The notes under the pieces: model-generated | Told to the model about the DNA's origin: nothing | Databases searched by the model: none | The model's input: only the letters and a program-made list of their open reading frames with translations | Shown here: piece after piece, positions 16,626-62,047 of the stretch | Position numbering within the stretch: the stretch's first letter is position 1 | Layout of the letters: each line of letters starts with the position of its first letter | Translations under genes and position numbers: made by a program | NCBI GenBank assembly: GCA_024137785.1 | Contig: JAHRHZ010000085.1 | Span: forward strand, 2,232,279 to 2,296,278 | Length of the DNA: 64,000 bases | Direction: 5' to 3' | Source: Ginglymostoma cirratum | Taxonomy: Eukaryota

Positions 16626-17768
16626 CATTGATACTTTTGCAGAACAAGAATGACAAAGACAGGACTGATAAAGTCAGAACCATTGCTTGAATGATAGTGG
16701 ATTGAATAATCAAGTCAAATCAAAAAATGCAATAAACATCAACAAATTAAAAAGATTAAAACAATGAAAAACTATGGTTGACACAGTAAGAACCATCCTA
16801 CACTGACAGAAAAGACAAAACGAAATAAAAATATCAATCCTTTCATGATCTAACTAACAGTGAAATGGTGAGAAAAATCTGCCAGTGTAGGAGTGTTTAG
16901 AAAGTTATTCAAAAACAATAATATTCACTTATTATGTGAAACAAAGTGGAGAGTTCCAGAGAATGATGAGTTGAATAGTCAGAATGAAGCCAGTTGCTAT
17001 CTTGAATGGGATATGTTAAGCAAGTTTGAAGGTAAAATAGAGTTGGTTCGTGAAACATTAAAGGAAGATAATAAGTCAATGACTACTTTTTGAAAGCAAT
17101 GAAAGACCACAAAGAGGACTGTACCAGACAGAAATGGATACAAAACACCCATAATACCAATATCACGTCATTCTCTCTGTGCATCTTTAAATTTGGCTGC
17201 TGGGTTTCACTGCTGCATACAATGGAGTTGCAGTTTTGTGTTCTGGTTTCAAGGTTAACTTGGGACCTTTCAAATTCAGAACAGCGTAAGTCAGCTGGCT
17301 TTTTCTCATGCTGTCTTTGGTCTGTAAAATTACATTGAAACTGCTGTATTTTTGCATCAAATATCATAAAAAGCTAAGAATTTTTCAATATAAAGCAGAA
17401 AGCAAATGATTGTAATGAAGAAAGTAATTACTATATTCAAACATATGAACAGAAAAGTACCTCTGCTGTACTGTTCTTTCATCCTGGGGCTTAGGAATTT
17501 TAGCATCCTTTGAGTGCACCAGTTTAAGATCAGCATACATTAATCTGTCTTCAGCTGTCTCTTGTTTCCTCTGGGAAGTTAAAGTTTAACATCCATGAAT
17601 TTATGTTTTTTGGAGTCAAGAATCAAAGTTGCATAGTAATCAATTAGAACTACTTTGTCTCCTTGAGTTTGCAAAATACTCTGTTATGTTCTTAACAGTT
17701 GAAAGCTTCTGTATCCAATCTCCTTCTCTCCACCTGACAAAAATGAAAGCTGCCTCATTGGCTGATGA

Positions 17769-24717: not shown

Positions 24718-25885
24718 ACATAGAACATAGGACATAGAATAATACAGCGCAGAACAAGCCATTCGGCACTCGATGTTGCGCCGACCTGTGAACTAATCTA
24801 AGCCCATCCCCTACACTATCCCATCATCATCCATATGCTTATCCAAGGACTGTTTAAATGCCCCTAATGCGGCTGAGTTAACTACATTGGCAGGCAGGGC
24901 ATTCCACGCCCTTACCACTCTCTGAGTAAAGAACCTGCCTCTGACATCTGTCTTAAATCTATCACCCCTCAATTTGCAGCCATGCCTCCTCGTACTAGCC
25001 GACGTCATCATCCTAGGAAAAAGACTCTCACTGTCCACCCTAACTAATCCTCTGATCATTTTGTAGGTCTTTATTAAATCCCCTCTTAGCCTTCTTCTCT
25101 CCAATGAGAACAGACCCAAGTCCCTCAGTCTTTCCTCATAAGACCTTCGCTCCAGACCAGGCAACATCCTGGTAAATCTCCTCTGCACCTTTTCCAATGC
25201 TTCCACATTGTTCCTATAATGGGGCAACCAGAACTGTACGCAATATTCCAAGTGAGGCCGCACTAACATTTTGTACAGTTGCAGAATGACATCACAGCTC
25301 CGGAACTCAATCCCTCAACCAATGAAACCTAACACACCGTATGCCTTCTTAACAGCACTATCAACCTGGGTGGCAACTTTCAGGGATCTATGTACCTGGA
25401 CACCAAGATCCCTCTGCACATCCACACTACCAAGAATCTTTCCATTGACCCAGTATTCTGCCTTCCTATTATTCTTCCCAAAGTGAATCACCTCACATTT
25501 ATCTGCATTGAACTCCATTTGCCACCTTTCAGCCCAATTCTGCAGTTTATCCAAGTCTCCCTGCAACCTACAACATTCTTCCTCACTGTCCACCACTCCA
25601 CCGACTTTAGTATCATCTGCAAACTTACTAACCCATCCACTTATGTCTGCGTCCAAGTCATTTATAAAAATGACAAACGGCAGTAGTCCTAAAACAGATC
25701 CTTGTGGCACACCACTAGTAACCGGACTCCAGGCTGAATATTTTCCATTAACCACCACTTGTTGCCTTCTTTCAGAAAGCCAGGTTCTAATCCAAACTGC
25801 TCAATCTCCCTCAATCCCATGCCTCCGCATTTTCTTCAATAGCCTACCATGTGGAACCTTATCAAAGGCTTTACTGAAGTCCATA
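24718..25885 (-). mobile_element. Young 5'-truncated CR1/HER1-like LINE
   Basis: GVPQGSVLG, FINDLD, KFADDTK and LVRPHLEYC. The two ORFs are in the same frame, separated by one TGA. (TTCTATG)n tail. Confidence 0.95.
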
Positions 25886-28939: not shown

Positions 28940-30031
28940 TGTAACTGCACAGAGGCTGGTATCCCATCACCAAGTCCCCCTTTATTTCCATGTGCACAGT
29001 ACACTGGCTGTGGCCAGCCAACTCGGAGGCAGCCTGAAGGGAGGAGATTCTGAATGCCTTGTTTATATTATTTTCTTTTCTTTATAACCCCATATATACA
29101 GAAGTAGTGTTTATTTTCCCCAGCGCCCGTGTTGTGTGCGTATAGGTGCAAGACACAGTGAAAACACCAATTGTATCAACAACGTTATTAATATTCCACC
29201 ACCCGGAAAAACGCCCATGTGGTCAGGGAACCAGTGACAAGCACAGCCCCGGCTGCGGCAATGTTCATGTGGAAGAAAAAGTGAAGGGGAGGGTAGGGAT
29301 CAAATCCAAATAGAATTCGAAGGGGAGATAAAGCACCCCAACCCCTGCGGCGCCCACCTCGCACTAAAGGCATTAAATGTGTAAGTGTGCTCCTCTTACA
29401 GGGACATCCGAGCTCGAACATAGCCGCAGGGGCAGGCAGTCAGTGTAAATGACCCCCCTCCACAGCCTGCTGCCTGGACCTGTTAATGAAGAGTTTGACC
29501 AGGCCCAGGAGCAGACCCACGTGTGGATCCTCTGACCTGTCAACCCCCGCTCCACTCCGGGTGCCCAAATATCAGGAGCGTGGGGCTGAAGTGCAGCCAG
29601 AAACACAAAAGGAGGGCTTTAAGATATCTGAAAAGGAAGTGCAAACGCCCACACCCAATATCCACATGGTCCACGGACTCCACAGCGCCACAAAACAGAC
29701 AGTTGGGCTGGGAATCCGGGAACCACTGCAATCTGCAGTTACATGGGACTGCCGTGTGCACAATCCCTCCCCGACATCCTCGAGGGAAAGGCGGATGGCT
29801 CCTGCATCGAGAGCCCACCTCTGCGGATCCCCGCCGCCCGGTGGTAAATGGGCATGACAAGGTGTGCCCGGGCGGTGGGTGAAGGAGAAGACGTGGATGA
29901 TGTACAGCAGCAGTCTGTACAAGGCTTGCCCTGTTTATATTGGTCAGCCAGGGCTCCCTGATTGGCCCAGGTTTACAACCTCAGTCAAAGATCTCACAGT
30001 CAATAAAATTCACCTGGTTCCAATCACTACA
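28940..30031 (-). mobile_element. Solo LTR (minus orientation) split by a Tx1 insertion
   Basis: TGTA...TACA termini. On the minus strand CCAAT, TATA (AATATAAA) and AATAAA occur in that order. No clear TSD. Confidence 0.65.
29070..29931 (-). mobile_element. Tx1/L1-clade non-LTR retrotransposon 3' fragment
   Basis: CLFCGAVESVDHVDIGC zinc knuckle followed by FWLHFSPTLLIFGHP, an A-rich tail, and TSD TGTTTATATT (29060-29069 and 29932-29941). Confidence 0.85.
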
Positions 30032-31415: not shown

Positions 31416-31641
31416 NNNNNNNNNNNNNNNNNNNNNNNNNNNNNNNNNNNNNNNNNNNNNNNNNNNNNNNNNNNNNNNNNNNNNNNNNNNNNNNNNNNNN
31501 NNNNNNNNNNNNNNNNNNNNNNNNNNNNNNNNNNNNNNNNNNNNNNNNNNNNNNNNNNNNNNNNNNNNNNNNNNNNNNNNNNNNNNNNNNNNNNNNNNNN
31601 NNNNNNNNNNNNNNNNNNNNNNNNNNNNNNNNNNNNNNNNN
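31416..31641. other. Assembly gap (226 N)
   Basis: N run. Confidence 0.99.
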
Positions 31642-31756: not shown

Positions 31757-31893
31757 NNNNNNNNNNNNNNNNNNNNNNNNNNNNNNNNNNNNNNNNNNNN
31801 NNNNNNNNNNNNNNNNNNNNNNNNNNNNNNNNNNNNNNNNNNNNNNNNNNNNNNNNNNNNNNNNNNNNNNNNNNNNNNNNNNNNNNNNNNNNN
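31757..31893. other. Assembly gap (137 N)
   Basis: N run. Confidence 0.99.
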
Positions 31894-34114
31894 GAGGAAT
31901 TTCATTTCATGCAGAGAGTTGTGAGTATCTTGAGCTAACTGTCTAAAAGAGAAATGCAGATTGGAAACCTCAAGACATTTCAGAAAAATTTAGGTGAGTA
32001 CTTGAAACCATGAAGCACACAAAGCTAAGGCCAAGTGCTGGGAAATGGGATTAAATTAAATCAATTCTCGATGACCAGCACAGACAGAATAGCCAAAAGG
32101 CAGCTTTCCTTGCAGTTAAAAAAAAACTGTGACTCTGAATCTCACATGTTTATGTTTATTGTTTATTGTTTAGGTTTGGGATTGTTATGTCCACATCTAC
32201 TGGGAGATCAACACATCATGGTTTATGTTACCTTTCAAAGGCAGTTTCATCAACAAACGTCACACTCAAATAAACACTCCAACCTCCACCAACTGTGGCT
32301 CAGCCATGCAGGAGTCAGATTTTTTGATGCTATGTGTAATTTATTTAAGAATGCGATCAAAAACTTAGCAATGAGAAATGAAATTAAGCGGATCGAATAT
32401 TAGCAAAAATGTTGACTTTGACTTTGTCAATTTTTAATTTTTTGATCATATATCATTTCTCAAAATTAATCTTAATCTTTTCATCTTAATCTTACTTTTA
32501 ATCTTAAGAATGCTGAACCATAAAGGGAGGTATGTTATATTTCCAGAATATCAGTCCCAGCAATTAAAACCTAGGCAGAATGTGAAGTATATCACTTTTA
32601 GTAAAAGTGCAGTGCAGTTAAAGTATTAAATAAGGAAGGCATTTCACAATATCTTGGTGTATTGTTTGGAAGTTCCAAGATTCAACTGGTACAGAGGAAA
32701 ACATGAAATAAATTGCAGAAAGTTTAGATATCGTGAAACAGAATCTTTTGCTGAGGATATGATGTATAATGGTGCAAATGTAAAATTAGAGTTAGGTAAT
32801 TCAGATCAAAATCAGTCACAATGGTGGTGGTCGAGAGTGACAAATGCATCAGGGGTAAGCATAGCAGGTGGGTGAGGAGTTATGGGGAAAGGTTGATGAG
32901 GAGCAGTGACAGGAGGTATATGGATGTGAGGGGAAGATGGGTTGGATGGGGTCAGATGTATAGGTCTGTAGTGGGAGTGTTAGATATCTGTCTGCATGGC
33001 TTAGTTCCATTGGGTGAGGATCAGTTTCCTAGAGCAGTTAAACAAGTTAAACAGATCTGGTAAGACGGAGCTGTCTGTTGGGGTGGGATGAGGTCTGTTA
33101 AACAGGAGTCAAGAGTTTTCATTCGACAGGAGTTACAGCAAGTTTTATTCTGATAGGGTTTTTTTCCTCATCACACACAGAAACATGGAATGTAGGAGCA
33201 GAAGTAGGCCATTTGGCTCTTTGAGCCTAGTCAATTCTATACAATCCTGGATGATCATCCAATTCAATCCCCTGTTCCTGCTTTCTCCCTGGATCTGATG
33301 ATCCATTAAGAACTATATCTACAGTTTCCATGTAATTCACAAGTAATAGGTAAATAACAAACAGAGATAATGCTCAAGAATCTCAGTATGTTTCGCAGCA
33401 CCTTTGTGCAAACACAAAGAAATAGAGTTAACATTTCCCATCCATCTGACTCTTCTTCTGAGCTGCTAAGTTATCCGGAACCCTTGAAGCCCCTGAGATC
33501 TGTTTCAGTGGCCTCCAGCACGAGGCGACTTCCCACCAGAAATGTAAACATCCCAGACACTTAACACAATGTCAGTAAGTCATGACTTCCAGACATCCCA
33601 GTTGCACCCAGTCTCCAAGTATCCAGGGTCTGGAAAAACTGAGCTTCGTACAAATTCCCAATGGTTGTTGTTGTGTTGGTGAATGACTAAAGACAACTCA
33701 TACTTGTTAATATGATTTCTTTTCCTGTACATTTTAATACAACACATTTTACCACGCCTCAAACTGGACATTCACCAAAGGTGAACATGGTGTGAGAAAT
33801 ATTTCTCAGATACCAGAAAGCCAATTGTTTCTTCGTATATTCTTCATATAACAAAAAAAAATTTGCTGAAAATTACCTTATGCATTTCTAATTAGTTAAT
33901 AAATAGACCACAGGCTGACATGCATGCATGTACAACCCAGTTAAAGTCTATCCATCAAAGTAAGCTGCCATCTGTGGTAACTGACAGCAGGTTTGTGCTG
34001 AGAAAATGTGCAACATGGAGCCATCCACATGTGGGTTTATTGTGTAATACTTAGCTTTCAAATGAACTTATAGGCAATTGAAAATATTGTAGAGCTGAGC
34101 TCAATACATGAAAC

Positions 34115-36839: not shown

Positions 36840-36894
36840 ATGTCAATGCGTCATTCACTATGGGATGTCTGTCTGCTGGGCATCTTGTGTGCAG
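36840..36894 (+). CDS. Exon 1: signal peptide MSMRHSLWDVCLLGILCA
   Basis: ATG, hydrophobic core, phase-1 donor GCAG|gtactc. The paralog has the same 55-nt length and a homologous sequence (60068-60122). Confidence 0.8.
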
Positions 36895-39800
36895 GTACTC
36901 ATTTCTTTTGCTGCAAGACATAACGGGAACTTACAAGTGGATTTGATAAATAAGTGGATTTTTTTATTTTTTTTTCAAGTCTGTTACTCCCAGAACTCAT
37001 TTGTCACTGAGTCTGTCAGGGAAAAAAATGTAACATTCAATTCAGGCAATAGTTTATAAGTGGGAGAATTAGTCGAACGGTAAAATGTGGTAAATTACTG
37101 TTGCATCAGTGGCCTGGAATAAGGATGTTATCTGGGTGGTGCAGACTGTCCTTCTTGTTTAATCTCAGTGTGCCTCCTTGGTTGACAGTTGCTGTGGGCA
37201 GTTCGGCCAAAGACAATCCGGACCTTGCACGAAAAACGGCGCAGAGAGGTTCATCAGTTCTCACGCAATGTCCTTTCTCCCCCGAATTCGATTATTCAAA
37301 TGTTGTCGCTTACTGGTGCAGAGAAGGTCATAGAACCATTCTGCAGGAGGATAGCAAAAAGTTCTTCTATGTAATTAGAGAAGTCTCCCTTCATATTCTG
37401 AATGTGACTCTCCGGGACGCTGGAACATATTACTGTGCCGTCAAGTATCAGCTTCGAACAGTTGGGAAGGAAACTGCTGTGCAACTTACTGTATATGGTA
37501 AGTGTCACCGCAGGTAAACACGGAGTCTTAGCTGCTTAGAAACAATCAACAACGGGAACCAAAACAATTTATTAGACACAGACATTTTATGTATAATATT
37601 GGCAGTTGTTTAAAATGAAACGTGTCAAGAATATGGAGACCTTGGAGAACCAGTAACACCTCAAAGTTTGAGATCTACTCTGTATTACAAATGAATCACT
37701 TGTGGGATGTGGGCATCACTGGCTGGCCAGCATTTATTGTCTGTCCTTAGTTGCCCTTGACAAGGTGGTGGTGAGCTGCCTTCTTGAACAGCCGCAGTCC
37801 ATGTGCTGTAAGTAAACTCACAATGCCATTAGGGGGAAATTACAGGATTTTCACCCAGAGTCAGTGAAGAAACAGTGATGTATTTCCAAGTAAGTATGGT
37901 GAGCAGCTTGGGAGAAGCTTGCAGGTGTTGGTGGTGTTCCCATATACTTGCTGCCCTTGCCCGTCTAGATGGTATTGATCATAAGTTTGGAAGGTGTTGA
38001 CTGAGGGCTTTTGGTGAACTTCTGCAGTGCAGCTTAAAGTTACACACTGCTGCTGCTGAGTATCTGTGGTGGAGTAACTGAAAGTGGTGCCAATCAAGTG
38101 GGTGACTTTTTACTGGATGGTGTCAAACTTCTTGGGTGTTTTTGGACATGCAGGCATGCAGGCAAATGGGGACCATTCCAACACACTCCTGACTTGTGCC
38201 TTTTAGATGGTGGACAGGCTTTGGGGAGCCAGCAGTTGAGTTACTCGCTGCAGTATTCCCAACCTCTGACCTACAGTTCTATTTATATTGGCTCGCCCAG
38301 TTCTGTTTCTGCTCAATGGTAACCCCCAAAATGTAGATAGTGGGAAATTCACTGATGGTGATGCCACTGAATATTAAGAGGTGGATGGCAAGACTGTTTC
38401 TTATTGGAGATGGTATTTGCCCTGCATTTGTGTGGCCTACATGTTCCTGTTAACTTTTCAGCCCAACCCTGATGTTGTCCAGTTCTTGCTGCATTTGATC
38501 ATGGGTTGCTTCAGTTTTATGAATTTAGCTTTTGTACATTTATGCATTTTGCAGCAACATTGATTGCAATACTTTCAAGTTTTTCTTTGTATATGAATAT
38601 GGAGTTACAGGATGAATATCCTTGAAGTTGTTTGCAATACTATGTGTTTTGAAATGTTTCATACCTCACGAGAAGGGCCAAATTTTCAGTCCCATCACTT
38701 GGATGGTTTTTGTTAAATTCCTAGAATCCAGGTCCAATTCCTCATCCTGTTTGCATAAGAAAGGTGCAGTAATACAATTCGATCGTGTTCCTATTATTAA
38801 GTTGAAACAAATTCTGGAAACTCTTTTTTCTAAATTTGCAGGAGGTATATTGAAAGGATTTAAGGAATTTTTTAAACTTGATAGATGTTTAACAATTTCG
38901 TGTACTGTTCACAGCAACAATTAATACAACTGTTTTGCTGGAAAAAAGTTGTTTCTGTAACTTAAAAAAGTACGTTTTTTGCAGAAGATGCAAAGTCGAT
39001 TTATTTAATTTGTGATATTTACCATTCAGTTCCACCAGCTCCTCTGAAAATTGTCTCCGCTCCATCCCAAGACCTTTTTTCTGCTTCTCTCCAACTCCAG
39101 CGCAGGACGTCTGACTTTTACCCAAAAGAATTTAACCTTACTTGGTATAAAAGTGGTGCAAACATATTGACAGGATTTAGGAATGAACAGCAAGCAAAAA
39201 CTGAGGATCTTTACGAAGGCGTCAGCACCTTGGAGTTACGAGAGGCAGTTGAGAGCGGGACAGTTCATACCTGTCAAGCATCTGACGTTTCAAGCCCATT
39301 TCCAGCAAATGCCAGCTATACTGTTACAAATGAAGGTAACATTACATATAATGTGGTACATCGAATGCTCACGCATCATTCAAAATGCGTGAATATGTAT
39401 AAAACGGTTATGACATTTATTTGCATGCGATAATATCAAAATACTGTTATTTGTATGTGATTAAGTCAAAGTTTAAATTAAGCCCTATTGGTTGGATTAA
39501 AGTTTTTTTTTCTTCATGCTGTTTGGAGTTGGTATGTAGTTATCAGATGTGACTTTATCAAGCGAGGTATTCAAACTCAACAATGGTCACATAACTATTT
39601 TCTGCATACACTGACAACTCGCAAAGGGCTGCGTGGTCAATGTTAATGCTTCAGAAAGTGTGAACAGTATCGAATTTGGTCAGGGCACATGTGAAGTTAT
39701 TGTGTGCCGTTCTGGTCACCCGACTAAAAAACGGATTTTATGAAACTAGAAACAGTGCAGAAAATATTTCCTAGGATGCAACGTGGACTGGAAGGTTTTA

Positions 39801-42800
39801 GTTCCAAGGAGAAGATGGAGAGGCTGTTTTTTTTTTCTTTCCTGGAGAGTAGCAGACTGAAGGGTGACCTTGTAGACGTCTACAAGATCACGAGAGGCAT
39901 AGATAAATAGACAGCTGACAGCTTTTCCACATGGTATGGGAATCTAAAACTGGAGGGCATAGGTTTAAGGTGAGAGGAAAGAGATACAAAAGAGCCCAGT
40001 GGAGATTTTTTTTTTCACACAGCAATGAGAATGGTGAGTCTTGAATGGGCTGTCAGAGGTAGTGTTGGAAGAGAGCACCATTTTGTCAATTAGGAAACAT
40101 TTGGACAGGTAAATGGATGGGTTAGGTATGGACGGATATGGACAAAACGCAGCACCTGGGACGAGTTAAATTGTGAAAACTGGGCAGCACAGAAAATTTG
40201 GGATGAAGGGCCTGTTTCCATGCTGTAAATCTCGATGACTATGATATAGCTACACTCAACCAGCAGCTTCAGCTTAATTCTCCATTCACCAGAGTGCCAC
40301 ATACTTGATTAATTGCTGAACTTTGATTTATTGCTGATTGGGTTGTAGCTGCAACCCAGTTAAAATTATTTTAATTGAAGTTTACCTCCATGTGAAACTC
40401 AAGGAAATCTGGAAGCAGGTTCCATTACCTATTTTTTCAGACATTTCGTTCGCAATCCAATTCAACTCCCACCAAATGATTTAATATTTTTTGACATAGC
40501 TTCAAGGACCAAACATTAACTGCAATTAGCTCTGTTTCCATTAATTTCAAATTTGTCATTTGCTGAGGTACTTTCATCATTTGCCTATTTTTGTAAATTT
40601 CAGAGATTTTGTGTTCAACTGCGTAGGGATCAGCTGAACAAAGAGACAACAAAATTGAAATGCTGTGACTACGAGAGAAATCAAATCAGTGAGGTGCAGG
40701 CCCGGACACTCTCGTTTAGTCAGTGCAATTGAGAATGATGCACATGACATTTTAACCTGTATATCTTCTGTTTATATTGTCACTCCTAAATTTGAATGTA
40801 CATGAACAGTACAGATTTTGCCTCTAAAATCGGTGTTACTGTGGCCTTTGGTTGTGCTGCTGGTGCACTTGCAATTCTAATACTGGTTGAGATGATTGTA
40901 AAGGGTTTTCTGTTCTTTACATCCAAAGGTATGAACAGGGATAAAATGTCTCAGTGAAATTAACATAATTGGGAACTGAACTTCTGAACTGTATAACTTA
41001 AGAAAATATTTTCTGTGAAAACTCATTCAAATGTACACCTTGCTTCACATCAAATTATGAAATAAGAAGGTTTGCAGCTTCAGTTTGCTAAGTTGTATTG
41101 GTGTAGATCAAAATTATGATGGCGTATTTCATTGTTGAAAGAAGGTTCCAAAGCTTCAATCCTCAAGACATAAATTCAAAGCATCTGTGTGTAACGTTTA
41201 GAGCTACATTGCCAAACTGTTGGTCCTGTTATACTCTGTTTATAATTGTCGAATACTAGTTGACTTGCTTTTGGTTTCTTTGGTTTGCCGTTGAGTACAA
41301 ATATCAACCATTTTTGTTGCCAACTTACGTCATTTTTATTGCTCAGGACAGCGAAAGAAAAAAATCAATAAATCCAACTCAACAAGAAGATGTGCTGAGG
41401 TAATTTTCCTTTATTCTGTCTATTTTAATTTTCAAGTCTCGTTGAACAATTTAAACTGGGAACCCTCGTATGATTTTTGAACATGCTAAGGTAAGTCTTG
41501 AAGATTTCATCAGCTCTCAAAAGCATAATTTCAGCTGAATAAAAACAAAATAAAGGAAATAAGATAGCGTGGGAAGTTTCACAAACTGTTGTCACTATTT
41601 TATATCGTCACACTTGTTTATAAATGTGTAAGCTATATCAATTAACTTTTGCTGATACTTTCAACTATCAATCGTAGGTTTGAAGCTGACAACTTTGATT
41701 TTTCTTTTTTTTTAATTCTTAACAAGTGACAGTGTGCTGAATAATTTTGCCACATTGATTACAGACAAAATAATCAATGTTGATTACATTGAGCTGATGA
41801 CTATTTTGAATGGTAGGTTTCTAATTGGAAAGAGAGATGCTTGTTCTCTCCTTCCTTTCTACGCTGTTCAAAATTAACTCATGCATTAGTCTTAGTTCAG
41901 TGATTATGTCTGACTTCTACTCAGCGCCTGTACCGAAGAACTCAATATATTTTGCGGACAGCTTGCGCAAAGTTGGCTTTCTTAGATAACTTTTACCGTA
42001 GGCTGCCTCTCTGCTAGTGCAACGTTCTGCAGCAACATGCTACCTTGAAACAGAAATAGATGAGCTGTTGTGAGGAAATCTTCTCTCATTATCCAATTTT
42101 CAAAAATTGGATATCAGTGACATGTGAGAGGAAGACTGAGAACAGTTTGTTTAAACTCGTGAAAAAGTAAATCTTTGTTGCTGACTACAGCGTGTGCAAT
42201 TGAATGACACATGTGAATCTTAACTGCGATTGAATGCAGTGCCGACCAGCAGATTGAATCACTTTAAATGCATTTTTAAAGCTGTTGAAGTCTTTAAATG
42301 AATTCAGTAGCTTTATTGTCTCAGCTTCCATCGAGGATCTGAACTTGCATTTTTAAAGAAATTTCCCCAAACTCCCTCCCCGACAACAATGTAACTAAAC
42401 TATCTGGACTGCAGTATGTCAAGAAAGCTGGTTCGCTTCTGGGGTCTTAATAGTAAGCAGTTACTGGCACCAAATACTGGTCTTGTCATCAAGGCTCTCA
42501 TGCCATTAAAAATAGTTCATGGTGCAGAAAAGATTCATTTCTGTACTGGAGATGCAGCAAAAGTTAAGCTTTTTTTCGTGGGGGTCTTCACAAAAGCGGA
42601 ACAAAGTCTTTACTCCATCACGGCATGTCTTTCTGTAAAATGTTGCAGCTGCACTGTTGTCGGTAACGGAATAAAGTCCTCTGATGTCCAGGAGCAGTGT
42701 TCAGCCTGTTTTTTATTGCTTCATGAACAATGGATCACATCAAATGAGAAAACAAAATTTTCTATGATTGACAAATACCTCACAGAAGTCCAAAGAGTAC

Positions 42801-44050
42801 CTTTTAGAGCAATGAAACGTTGTGGTTTACTTTTCAAACAAAAGCGCACTGTACTTGTCGCATTTTTTCCTTGTTACTAACCTGAACTTGTTCCTTCCTA
42901 AATAGTTGACACATTTTCGAAGTTAAAACATCAATAATTTACTTTAAAACACTTTCAAAATGCGCTGCACCTTCGTGTTCACTTCAGGCTTCAATGCGTT
43001 CATTTATTACCATTTAAATGGCCGATTCAAATAATTACCTTCCTTTATTCATCAGGGAACAGAATGATTCTAAAATTAATTTTCCAATAGCAGTGGTAAG
43101 TACAGTTGTTCCTCTTCTCTAATTGACTTGCTAATGTAACTAATTTAATATGAGGCAATGTTCAGTCAAAACCTGCATCATTCACCCTCTGAGTGAAAGG
43201 TGTTACTAATTTATTTCAAGTAATCGTCACTTATAATTTTACTTCGCAAGAGTGTGAAATGTGATTTTTGTTATTGCTATTAAACAAATACAGATGTATT
43301 TATTTTTATTTCATTTTATAAACTGTACTGACGACTCAATTTGTGCCAGAATGCAATAAAATAGAAAACCATCTATCAGAATTCAAAAAGCTAATTAGTT
43401 GAACTGAAGCATGCAGCCTTCTCTTCTGCATAATTAAGACTATATTAAGATCAATAAAATTGAGAAAAATAACGTTTGCTTGTTGTTTCTAAGTGTGATG
43501 TTCCTGGCAAGAAAAAGTTCAGAGTGAGAAACTATAAAGTGTTGTGATTGTAATGAAGTGCTAGCAAAGACTGTGCAACAAACTAATTGTCCCTGGTAAG
43601 AATTTATGCTTGTCTCTTGACTCCAAAATAAAATAACCTAAAGAAGGATAAATCTTGACTTTCTAGAGAAAACAAGAGATGCCTGAAGATAAGCAGACAT
43701 ATGCTGCTCTTAATCAAGTTTTTTTCTGAGGACTGCATGATGCCAAAACAACAGGATGAAATTACAATATATACAGAGGTACATTTCAGGTCATATGTGT
43801 AAATAATCAGTTCATTCATCAGAATGCGTTGATCTGGACTTGATGTTGAAAATCGCTTTGTATAATTTGCATCTAGAATGATTTAAATGAATGGTAATTC
43901 AGTCTCAATGTTGTTTTTCAGACAAAACACTGCATGACAGACGGCAGACTGACTTACCTTGCTCTGAAATTCAATGATTCAAGTACATTATCAAAACACA
44001 AACACCAAGAAAAATGTCCAGTGTATGCAGCGGTGAAAAGCAGCTACTAA
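36840..44050 (+). CDS. Spliced IgSF type I membrane receptor (leader-VJ-C1-TM-ITIM tail), SIRP-like architecture; join(36840..36894,37189..37497,39030..39335,40815..40928,41347..41399,43922..44050), 321 aa
   Basis: All six exons have GT-AG boundaries with compatible phases (1,1,1,1,0) and give one open frame from ATG 36840 to TAA 44048-44050. V-set, C1-set, TM and ITIM motifs are each visible. Exons 1-3 are conserved in the paralog at 60068-62047. Confidence 0.82.
37189..37497 (+). CDS. Exon 2: Ig V-type domain with J-like G strand
   Basis: Acceptor ttgacag|TT and donor G|gtaagt, phase 1-1. Motifs: B-strand Cys (QCPF), C-strand YW, SLHILNV, DAGTYYC, then VGKETAVQLTV. Confidence 0.92.
37700..38515 (-). 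mobile_element. CR1/L2-group LINE 3' fragment in intron 2
   Basis: Homologous to 12720-13300 and 3110-3455. Confidence 0.75.
39030..39335 (+). CDS. Exon 3: Ig C1-set domain (B-strand Cys replaced by Arg)
   Basis: Acceptor ccattcag|TT and donor G|gtaac, phase 1-1. Translation VPPAPLKIV...LQRRTSDFYPKEFNLTWYK...DLYEGVSTLE...VHTCQASD shows the FYPxxxxxxW C1 signature. Confidence 0.9.
39685..40245 (+). mobile_element. CR1-type LINE 3' end in intron 3
   Basis: Degenerate QFWSP...RLKGDL...FKVRG and a 3' UTR. Confidence 0.75.
40815..40928 (+). CDS. Exon 4: transmembrane segment DFASKIGVTVAFGCAAGALAILILVEMIVKGFLFFTSK
   Basis: Acceptor tacag|AT and donor G|gtatga, phase 1-1, with a 20-residue uninterrupted hydrophobic run. 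Confidence 0.82.
41347..41399 (+). CDS. Exon 5: juxtamembrane cytoplasmic exon GQRKKKINKSNSTRRCAE
   Basis: Acceptor tttttattgctcag| and donor GAG|gtaatt. 53 nt, phase 1 to 0, which bridges the TM exon and the phase-0 last exon. Basic positive-inside stretch. Confidence 0.65.
43056..43095 (+). other. Possible alternative cytoplasmic mini-exon (acceptor at 43056 or 43063)
   Basis: Polypyrimidine tract + cag and a strong donor GTG|gtaagt. A start at 43063 gives in-frame NDSKINFPIAV; a start at 43056 gives GTE-stop. Confidence 0.4.
43922..44050 (+). CDS. Exon 6: cytoplasmic tail with ITIM LTYLAL and distal Tyr motif PVYAAV
   Basis: Acceptor ttgtttttcag|. Phase-0 translation TKHCMTDGRLTYLALKFNDSSTLSKHKHQEKCPVYAAVKSSY*. 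Confidence 0.85.
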   Translation, partial: TKHCMTDGRLTYLALKFNDSSTLSKHKHQEKCPVYAAVKSSY

Positions 44051-60067: not shown

Positions 60068-62047
60068 ATGTCTGTGTGTTATTCACAACAGGACTTCTGT
60101 GTGTTGTGCATCGTGTGTGCAGGTGCACATTTATTTTTAGCTACGTATGAATGGTTCATAAGGTGCAACATGAATTTAAAGCTAGATTGGAAAACTTTGC
60201 GGACACTTCCTTTCATTATTATTTTCGAGTTTTTTTGCATGTTAAATTTCACAGAGCTCATTTGTCATTGTGTCAGGGGCAAGAAAAGATGACATTCAAT
60301 GAGGACAATAGTTTAAAAATTGGAGAATTAGTGGATTAGGCATGGGAAATTGATGTTGCATCAATGGCCTGGAACAATAGAACATAGAACATAGAATTTA
60401 GAACGTAGAACAGTACAGCACAGTACAGACCCTTCAGCCCACGATGTTGTGCCAACTTGTTTTCCTACTAAGATCAATCTACCCTGCCTAACCTCCATTT
60501 TACTATTCTCAATGTGCCTATGCAAGAGTCGCTAAAACGTGTCTCAAGTATCTGACCCCACTACCACTGCCGGCAGCGCATTCCACATGCCCACCACTCT
60601 CTGTGTAAAGAACCTACCTCTGACAACTCCCCTATCCCTCCCTCTAATCACTTTTAAATTATGCCCCCTCGTAATAGTCATTTCTGTCCTGGGAAAAAGT
60701 CTCTGAGTATCCAAGGATGTTATTTGGACAGACCGTCTTCTTGTTTAATCTAACCGTGTTTCCTTGGCTGATAGTTGCTGTGGGCATTTCGGCCAAGCTA
60801 AAACCAGATCTCGGACATATAACTGTGCAGAGACGTTCATCAGTTTTGATGCTATGTCCATTCTCCTTCGAAAGCAACCATTGAAATGTTGTCCCTTACT
60901 GGTGGAGAGAACGTCATAATACCTTTCTGCAGGAGGATAGCAGAAAGTTGTTCACTGTTGTTAGAGGAACAGCCCTACCTTAAACTTCTGAATGGGACTG
61001 TCCGGGACATTGGAACACATTACTGTGTCGTCAAGTATCAGCATCGAGCGGTTGGGAAAGGAACTGCTGTGCAACTTACTGGAGATGGTGTGACCGCAGA
61101 CAAACATGGTGTCTTAGCTGCATTTCACATAAACAATGAACTTCTTTAAAATGAAATTATCAACAGTGTGCGAAACTTGTAGAAAATGTCACAGTACAAT
61201 GATGACCATCTGCACTTCTTTGGAAAATTGTGCTGAAATGTACCTATTGCAGAAGAAGTTAATATCAAATTTTGAAGCTATCCATTTTTCTTTACTAATC
61301 TAAACATTGGGAAACAATTTGAAAAGATACAGATAATACCTGCAGTATTGCATATTTTGAATATCCGGTATCTAATTGAAAATAAATTTCCTGTCCCCAT
61401 CGTTTGGACCGTGGCTGTCGCAGTTTCTACGATCTCGATTCGAGTTCCAAACCGGTTGTTACAAGAAGGATGCAGAATGACATCCCAAATGCATTTTCAA
61501 TAATTAATATGTATATTGGTAAAACAGATTTTATTGAACTTTGTAATGGTGCATCAATTGCTTTGGGGGGGGTGGTGCGGAGGGCCAGGGGTTTTATGTG
61601 ATAAATGTAATATTTACTCCAAACAAATAATGATGACTAATGCAAAAACCATGCCTCAAAATTACACATGGTTTGTTCATTAATTAATTGAAGCTTTGGA
61701 GTAGCATTCTGATGTTTAGATTTATCTGAATTATATTATTTACAATGCAGCTTCACCAGCTCCCCTGAATATTGTGCCAGTACCATTGGAAGACATTTCT
61801 TTCATTCTGCACTGCAGGACTTCTGCTTTTTACCCAAAAGACTTTAATATTACTTGGCACAAAAATGATACAAAAGCCTTGAGTGGATTTAGAAATGAAC
61901 AACAAGTAAATACCAACGGATGTCATGAGGTTGTCAGAACCGGAGAAGTGCCAGAGGCAGTCGAATGTGACACAGCTTACACTTGTCAAGTGCATCACAT
62001 TTCAAGCTCATTTCCAGAAAATGTCAGTTACACTATTGTGAAAGAAG
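60068..62047 (+). pseudogene. Tandem paralog pseudogene of the VJ-C1 receptor: leader 60068..60122, V 60775..61087, C1 61751..62047
   Basis: Exon and intron homology to the 36.8-39.3 kb gene. In-frame TGA at 60882-60884 (TCA in copy 1), frameshift near 60972-60975, V donor shortened (gtaagtgtc to gtgtg), C1 phase-1 donor lost. The C1 keeps both Cys (HCRT, YTCQVHH). Confidence 0.9.
60377..60711 (-). mobile_element. CR1/HER1-like 3' end inserted in intron 1 of the pseudogene
   Basis: (TAGAACA)n tail. Absent from the orthologous site GGCCTGGAA^TAAGGATG (37111-37127) of copy 1. Confidence 0.88.

Follow-up and report, generated by a model that had tools for sequence, protein, structure and literature searches.

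Is the gene at positions 36840–44050 of a 64,000-nucleotide stretch of Ginglymostoma cirratum DNA a working inhibitory receptor of the immunoglobulin (Ig) superfamily, and to which receptors is it related? This stretch, hereafter called the window, covers positions 2,232,279 to 2,296,278 of the forward strand of contig JAHRHZ010000085.1 (assembly GCA_024137785.1). An earlier note had described the gene as a non-rearranging receptor with a variable-type (V) domain, one C1-set domain, a transmembrane (TM) segment, and two tyrosine motifs, and had proposed it as a model for the ancestor of antigen receptors. We found that the gene is one further member of an already automatically annotated chondrichthyan family of V-C1 proteins. 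This copy is probably decaying or crippled, either as a young pseudogene or as a damaged receptor under relaxed constraint, rather than a working prototype.

A six-exon gene with an open path

The six phase-compatible exons and the 321-residue protein proposed in the earlier note were reproduced exactly from the sequence, including exon boundaries, phases, and open frame. The exons total 966 nucleotides (nt), corresponding to 321 codons and a stop, and the introns, rebuilt from the raw sequence, are all GT-AG. Similarity searches were performed exon by exon.

All six exons lie on the + strand. Exon 1 (36840–36894, 55 nt, phase 0 to 1) contains the start codon and most of a split leader, MSMRHSLWDVCLLGILCA, which is matched by the leader of the zebra shark (Stegostoma) model P0156, MFVCHSLWDVCLLGILCS. 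Exon 2 (37189–37497, 309 nt, phase 1-1) encodes the end of the leader and a compact V-type domain, with the G strand VGKETAVQLTVY in the same exon. Exon 3 (39030–39335, 306 nt, phase 1-1) encodes the C1-set domain. Exon 4 (40815–40928, 114 nt, phase 1-1) encodes the stalk and the expected hydrophobic TM segment, IGVTVAFGCAAGALAILILVEMIV; its acceptor is the second AG ('tacag' before 'ATT'), as required by the frame. Exon 5 (41347–41399, 53 nt, phase 1 to 0) reads GQRKKKINKSNSTRRCAE in a frame that is not that of the family, and the last exon (43922–44050, 129 nt including the stop, phase 0) reads TKHCMTDGRLTYLALKFNDSSTLSKHKHQEKCPVYAAVKSSY before the stop codon.

Loss of hallmark residues from the C1 domain

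Exon 3 matched the Pfam C1-set profile PF07654 (2.6e-6, 28.1 bits; cut-off 21). Its AlphaFold2 (AF2) model had a predicted local distance difference test (pLDDT) score of 84, and the 50 best structural matches of the model were nearly all Ig constant-type domains, mostly C1-set, with Z values of 10.8–12.7. The Z value was 12.7 for the constant domains of UrIg2 and the T-cell receptor (TCR), IgNAR C3, and HLA-DP, and 12.1 for SIRP-gamma d3. C1-set families were inseparable by structure, as Z values tied at ~12–12.7 across UrIg2, IgNAR, TCR, HLA class II, Fab, and SIRP-gamma constant domains. The best PDB match of the exon was an Ig kappa chain (2e-5); this lead was rejected as general C1 similarity, and the profile search ranked SIRP-alpha above the light chains.

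The features that mark C1-set domains are a FYP-type motif ([FY][FYH]P) opening the BC loop, a 13-residue spacing between Cys and Trp together with a disulfide, and xVxH (Hatherley et al. 2009, PMC2785349). The window copy kept FYP (residues 29–31 of the exon 3 translation), and the spacing from position 24 to W38 was the right 13 residues. At the canonical B-strand Cys position, the codon at 39101–39103 (+ strand) is CGC (Arg), one base from TGC, and only Cys81 of the F strand is left for the B-F disulfide. Residue conservation was scored against 56 complete relatives: all 56, as well as the neighboring pseudogene, keep this Cys. The family sequence C-x-V-x-H (V 93%, H 98%) has become C-Q-A-S-D in the window copy. 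Thus the claim of one C1-set domain holds for profile, fold, and FYP, but the B-strand Cys and xVxH have been lost in this copy.

The C1 departures were C24R, G59D, Y79H (the F-strand Tyr), V83A, and H85D, with R56K as a conservative change, and those in the V exon were W43C, G94E, and G96A; all of them lie at columns that are 88–100% conserved in the family. At the 13 C1 columns with at least 90% conservation, the window copy showed 4 departures compared to a family mean of 0.45, a count exceeding that of the dead paralog next door. When private replacements in C1 and TM were counted against an outgroup of the two zebra shark proteins, 12 fell to the window copy and 3 to the whale shark counterpart (p=0.035). 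The window protein therefore changes about four times faster than its whale shark counterpart.

A short V domain with a degenerate J-type motif

Exon 2 matched the Pfam V-set profile (1.5e-10). The domain is short, with 54 residues between the cysteines, and its AF2 model (pLDDT 85) has no C'' strand. In the structural search the model fitted IgNAR V and B7-2 V as well as I-set domains, the best matches being I-set and short V domains.

The V was correctly described as germline-joined and non-rearranging. The G strand lies inside the V exon, no heptamer or nonamer resembling a recombination signal sequence (RSS) was present in 37150–37600, and the gene has neither the RSS nor the separate J segment of a rearranging Ig or TCR V segment. 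The G strand was also said to be J-like. It is indeed in the same exon, but its motif is degenerate in this copy: where the family consensus is NGTGsxLxV (Gly 91% and 88%), the window reads VGKETAVQLTV, and both glycines of the G-x-G of VJ-type domains (FGxGTxLxV) are replaced. With a V this short, I-set and short V domains as its best model matches, and a degenerate J motif, the comparison with a TCR-chain VJ domain could not be upheld. W43C changes the second Trp of the family's YWW to Cys. The best PDB match of the V exon, to pIgR/CD300, came through this 'YWC' and was misleading because of the Cys; the family motif is YWW, the Cys being specific to the window copy, and the lead was rejected.

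Re-framed cytoplasmic exons

Exon 4 was 71–78% identical to the zebra shark models P0152 and P0156, and its TM segment carries a Glu that close relatives lack. In the last exon, which is conserved in P0152, P0005, and P0153, LTYLAL is followed 23 residues on by PVYAAV. Both tyrosine motifs of the proposed inhibitory tail are present, but only LTYLAL fits the consensus of an immunoreceptor tyrosine-based inhibitory motif (ITIM), of which it is a canonical example. The intact tail of a relative, P0152, runs ...SKG-RETKNSRNPTQQEDG-RKEEMPDDKLTYAALNLVGSEDGIMLKQQEEITVYAE-TKHSMADGRLTYLALK...PVYAAVKSRN; it is in the family frame and includes four tyrosines. Two of these tyrosines are missing from the window copy, which is frame-shifted in two cytoplasmic exons.

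The first of the two is exon 5. In the family frame its letters read SERKKSINPTQQEDV, a frame that cannot be reached from exon 4 (phase 1), and the six-exon model reads QRKKKINKSNSTRRCAE. The family version of the exon would end at 41394, where the window has CT rather than GT at 41395–41396. A spliced contig from a relative (sequencing run X9) is one letter shorter over 41347–41363 (16 letters compared to 17 in the window), stays in the family frame, and exits the exon at 41394. An A7 run (41358–41364, + strand) is the likely site of the extra base, the identity of which we infer. The donor of the window exon lies 5 nt downstream of the family donor, and +1 and +5 together restore the phase.

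The second is an exon at 43667–43778 (+ strand) that is conserved in the family and skipped by the six-exon model. It is the first ITIM exon of the family, matches 'RKEEMPDDKLTYAALNLVGSEDGIMLKQQEEITVYAE' of zebra shark P0152, and has 112 nt compared to 111 in relatives. In phase 0 it reads RKQEMPEDKQTYAALNQVFF and then a stop, which the frameshift brings in directly after QTYAALNQVFF; the other frame continues SEDCMMPKQQDEITIYTE. The +1 frameshift is at a T7 run (43719–43725, + strand), and in DNA contigs of a related species one T is missing at 43721.

Within the long intron that separates exon 5 from the tail exons lies a 154-residue open reading frame (ORF) beginning with ATG (42416–42880, + strand), which showed no similarity to the family proteins compared here.

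A V-C1 family in cartilaginous fishes

A phmmer search with the C1 exon against 1.84 billion representative proteins, a collection with no entries from the window's own species, returned 148 matches with E<1e-3, of which ~90 were V-C1 proteins of 200–450 residues. Named members came from sharks, rays, and a chimaera, namely Rhincodon, Stegostoma, Hemiscyllium, Chiloscyllium, Heterodontus, Heptranchias, Scyliorhinus, Carcharodon, Cetorhinus, Pristis, Amblyraja, Hemitrygon, Mobula, and Callorhinchus, and most were named SIRP-alpha-like. The main automatic NCBI name was 'tyrosine-protein phosphatase non-receptor type substrate 1-like', that is, SIRP-alpha-like; the others were 'signal-regulatory protein beta-1-like', 'NCR3LG1-like' (two relatives), 'H-2 class II beta-like', 'Ig lambda-like', and 'uncharacterized'. 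The family is hence not hidden or undescribed in the sense first suggested, since at least 12 cartilaginous-fish genomes have annotated relatives, mostly under the SIRP-alpha-like name. We found no paper describing the chondrichthyan V-C1 family, only automatic names. A Hemiscyllium ocellatum model (P0154, 546 residues) consists of two fused family genes, V-C1-TM followed by V-C1-TM-ITIM, and is automatically named 'cell adhesion molecule-related/down-regulated by oncogenes-like', which illustrates the poor annotation of the cluster.

Among 55 members with tails, an ITIM was present in 25, and 20 had no ITIM but a charged TM, in most cases with Arg and a short tail. Judged from these motifs, the layout is that of a paired inhibitory and activating receptor family. 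More family copies lie on the same contig, from 167 kb before to 477 kb beyond the window.

The closest relative was the whale shark protein XP_048462082 (P0001), with 85% identity in the phmmer search and 83% in the tree alignment, and the two zebra shark models P0152 and P0156 were 78–79% identical. These three fell in the same subclade as the window copy (99/92), with C1 domains 78–84% identical and the same leader, TM, and tail exons. They keep the C1 Cys, Tyr, and His; Stegostoma also keeps the Val, which the whale shark and the window copy have changed to Ala. The whale shark model (212 residues) has the second half of the V exon spliced out and shares the shifted frame of exon 5 (KKKINKSNST), inside which it ends. 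The whale shark copy may thus be defective too, and the slip in exon 5 may be older than the split of the whale shark and the window species.

Two blocks of the window (29848–29975 and 32173–32385, + strand) matched the odd N-terminal 108 residues of P0152 at 68–72% identity. These residues are probably a spurious upstream exon. Because block 32173–32385 lies upstream in the window and matches the P0152 model, the alignment suggests that P0152 is at the locus orthologous to the window.

Probable placement beside SIRP

Outside the cartilaginous fishes, the proteins closest to the C1 exon were SIRPs of lungfish, coelacanth, turtle, and rodents. Chains of Ig, IgNAR, and UrIg2 were also among the matches, with scores inflated by their many domains. 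Since whole-protein E-values are inflated for multi-domain Ig, UrIg2, and IgNAR, single C1 domains were extracted for the tree. The tree covered C1 domains of the shark family, SIRPs, IgNAR, an IgH-like chain, UrIg2, and UrIg-like proteins, without rows for TCR, major histocompatibility complex (MHC), Ig light-chain, tapasin, NKp30, and B7-H6 domains. Its rows included P0040, which is UrIg2 (1e-142 to the UrIg2 crystal sequence), and the UrIg-like proteins P0114 (2e-77) and P0143.

In the C1 tree the shark V-C1 family formed one clade (100/99). It stood beside a SIRP d2-type clade (95/95), a d3-type clade (98/92), and a turtle and frog SIRP-like group in an unresolved four-way fork, nested in neither d2 nor d3. 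This SIRP side was split at 88/88 from IgNAR, an IgH-like chain, UrIg2, and the UrIg-like proteins. The comparison with SIRP drawn in the earlier note was well chosen: the closest C1 relatives outside sharks are SIRPs, and the tree places the family on their side. When the family profile was searched against PDB, SIRP-alpha scored 105 bits, above all antibody light chains (at most 87) and just under UrIg2, whose 116.6 bits are a sum over 3 matched stretches.

The window gene has a single C1 exon between V and TM, and most relatives are also V-C1, rather than the V-C1-C1 of SIRP. In their motifs, the predicted tails and paired forms resemble those of SIRP, with LTYLAL here, four tyrosines in P0152, and members with TM Arg and a short tail. 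We consider with moderate confidence that the family is a sister or co-orthologous group of the SIRPs with a single C1, and neither a one-to-one SIRP-alpha ortholog nor a UrIg or B7-H6 gene.

Splicing in a relative

No RNA run holding the window gene was found, and no sequencing run contained more than 6% of its words. The contigs aligned to the window all came from relatives and were ~88–90% alike. In run X9, a small run from the relative, a contig of 932 nt (depth 39.7) was 88% alike. This run is probably RNA, because its depth is exon-enriched. Exon 3 was at contig positions 393–695, with ends at 39031 and 39333 and 88% identity, and the contig joined 40929 to 41364 (exon 4 to exon 5) and 41394 to 43924 (exon 5 to the last exon). 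The relative uses the exon chain 3-4-5-last and skips exon 43667–43778; this transcript contains nothing direct on the window copy.

Decaying copy or working receptor

Intact members of the family would be type I membrane proteins with a split leader, a compact germline-joined V domain as the putative ligand binder, a C1 stalk, a TM segment, and a tail in which LTYAxL and xVYAxx tyrosine motifs alternate. By analogy with SIRP-alpha and other ITIM receptors, Src-family kinases may phosphorylate these tyrosines, which would then recruit SHP-1 and SHP-2 and damp activation. Sister genes with a TM Arg and a short tail may be activating partners that act through an adaptor with an ITAM (immunoreceptor tyrosine-based activation motif). 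The window gene is one copy in a tandem birth-and-death cluster of such shark SIRP-like receptor genes. It has an open path of 321 codons to the ITIM exon, in which exon 5 is re-framed through a new donor and the frameshifted first ITIM exon would have to be skipped.

We favor, with somewhat more than even confidence, the reading in which this copy is decaying or crippled, and we infer its loss of function. Decay and birth-and-death turnover are supported by the dead paralog and the orphan tail exons in the same window, and the copy is a poor representative of the family because of its departures at hallmark residues and in two cytoplasmic exons. Several points weigh against this reading. The path is fully open over 321 codons, with canonical splice sites throughout. 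In exon 5, the donor 5 nt downstream makes up for the +1, so that the phase into the ITIM exon is kept; this compensation could reflect continued selection (rough chance estimate, ~15%). The six-exon form is a natural isoform by this argument, because the transcript of the relative also skips exon 43667–43778. Both frame slips lie in homopolymers of 7 bases and could be errors of assembly, a disulfide is dispensable for the folding of some Ig domains, and fast change in a receptor can be positive selection. It is accordingly conceivable, though on the whole the weaker case, that the gene is a fully functional, fast-evolving inhibitory receptor whose six-exon transcript is normal, with exon 5 as a mere linker and a C1 that folds without its disulfide. 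The compensated frame change in exon 5, the junction of exon 5 with the last exon in the mRNA of the relative, the open frame with its canonical sites, and the confident AF2 models of both domains (pLDDT 84–85, although these models lean on the family alignment) all fit this. It is opposed by the loss of a Cys invariant in 56/56 relatives together with four more near-invariant C1 residues, by the Glu within the TM that relatives lack, by the fourfold faster rate, by the loss of two of four tail tyrosines, and by the lack of transcript evidence for the window copy. A broader version, taken as a whole, appears rather doubtful to us: that the whole family is the cartilaginous-fish sister group of SIRP, with a single-C1, TCR-chain-sized V-C1 layout nearer to the postulated pre-RAG receptor than mammalian SIRP, and that the window copy is a live re-framing, its +1 slip rescued by a new donor, and not a dead gene.

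Two other proposals concern kinship rather than decay. It is improbable that the gene is the cartilaginous-fish one-to-one ortholog of mammalian SIRP-alpha, the CD47 receptor. The NCBI names of relatives, the rank of SIRPs as the closest non-shark relatives, the position of the C1 on the SIRP side of the tree, and the four-tyrosine YAxL/YAxx alternation of relatives, which is like that of SIRP-alpha (P0152 compared to P0163), would suit such orthology. However, the family has a single C1 domain instead of two, its clade lies outside both SIRP d2 and d3, and there are dozens of divergent paralogs per genome rather than one conserved gene. In addition, the V is ~10 residues shorter than the SIRP V and scored 26–44 bits against it, no better than against the IgNAR V (35 bits). 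Given the single C1, the huge expansion within the lineage, and a clade outside d2 and d3, one-to-one orthology, a question that the earlier note had raised, is unsupported. Still more remote is kinship with B7-H6 (NCR3LG1), UrIg/UrIg2, or some other relic of antigen receptors instead of SIRP. Two relatives carry the automatic name NCR3LG1-like and other relatives are called Ig lambda-like or MHC class II beta-like, the UrIg2 constant domain was the top structural match (Z 12.7), the B7-H6 constant domain reached Z 11.7, and UrIg2 had the 116.6 bits summed over 3 stretches. Against these stand the tie of Z values across all C1-set proteins and the C1 tree, in which UrIg2 (P0040), the UrIg-like proteins (P0114, P0143), and IgNAR lie beyond the 88/88 split. 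The gene is best read as a decaying or crippled member of the SIRP-like shark family.

Other copies and repeats in the window

The 64-kb window contains only family members and repeats. A tandem pseudogene paralog lies at 60068–62047 (+ strand), with a leader at 60068–60122, a V exon at 60775–61087, and a C1 exon at 61751–62047. Its V exon has an in-frame TGA stop and a frameshift; its C1 exon has an open frame and keeps the Cys, and TG has taken the place of the GT donor. Up to the window end, neither a TM nor a tail exon of this paralog was found. Its C1 groups with zebra shark LOC125459911 (P0153), and the two window copies thus belong to different sublineages.

Two cytoplasmic exons of another family member lie on the - strand at 17190–17576 (RKQETAEDRLMYADLKL..., and TKDSMRKSQLTYAVLNLKGPKLTLKPEHKTATPLYAAVKPSSQI followed by a stop), with LMYADL, LTYAVL, and PLYAAV and an open frame to the stop. 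No V or C1 exon for them was detectable upstream, between them and 36 kb, and they are probably a gene remnant.

Introns 2 and 3 of the main gene carry high-copy interspersed repeats common to these sharks: the summed contig depth at 38101–38500 and 39900–40300 was 10^4 to 5x10^5 in all four runs. Elsewhere in the window, two adjacent ORFs of 152 and 147 residues (24811–25758, - strand) resemble, on visual inspection, the reverse transcriptase of a retroelement (FADDTKV motif), and runs of N occupy 31416–31641 and 31757–31893.

Significance and comparison with known systems

If the family is the shark counterpart of SIRP, SIRP-type V-C1 paired receptors would date to the base of the jawed vertebrates. 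If true, this would bear on the long-standing idea that SIRPs are descendants of the precursor of Ig and TCR chains or stand beside it. As a model for the pre-RAG antigen-receptor ancestor, the window copy adds nothing to an argument already made for SIRP (Hatherley 2009, PMC2785349). The copy is useful as an illustration of birth-and-death turnover in the cluster, and it cautions that hallmark residues can be lost and exons re-framed unnoticed behind an open frame with tidy splicing. With its ITIM and Arg-TM forms, the family would deserve a proper description and a study of its expression.

Several known systems resemble the family in part. PRARP genes and teleost NITRs are V(J) receptors that do not rearrange, have ITIM or charged-TM forms, and are discussed as relatives of antigen receptors; teleost NITRs have no C1 domain. 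B7-H6 shares an ectodomain of V and C1 type and a tail with tyrosine motifs, and its name was automatically given to two relatives; the window exons gave no sequence match to it above the general Ig background. UrIg and UrIg2 (Flajnik et al. 2023, 2025, PMC12227049) are likewise elasmobranch genes with a non-rearranging single-exon V, a split leader, and C1-type domains, and are discussed as relics of the antigen-receptor precursor in a paper that mentions neither ITIMs nor SIRPs (PMC12227049). They have three to eleven C domains compared to one here, and their C domains (P0040, P0114) group with Ig on the other side of the tree.

The nearest system is the SIRP family itself. The shark family differs from it in having one C1 instead of two, a shorter V without the C'' strand, and a very large lineage-specific expansion; the window copy has neither the C1 Cys nor xVxH. 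The two families are alike in the germline-joined V, the C1-set domain or domains, the TM segment, the tail of alternating YAxL-type tyrosines, the putatively paired ITIM and basic-TM activating forms, and the position of their C1 domains on the same side of the tree.

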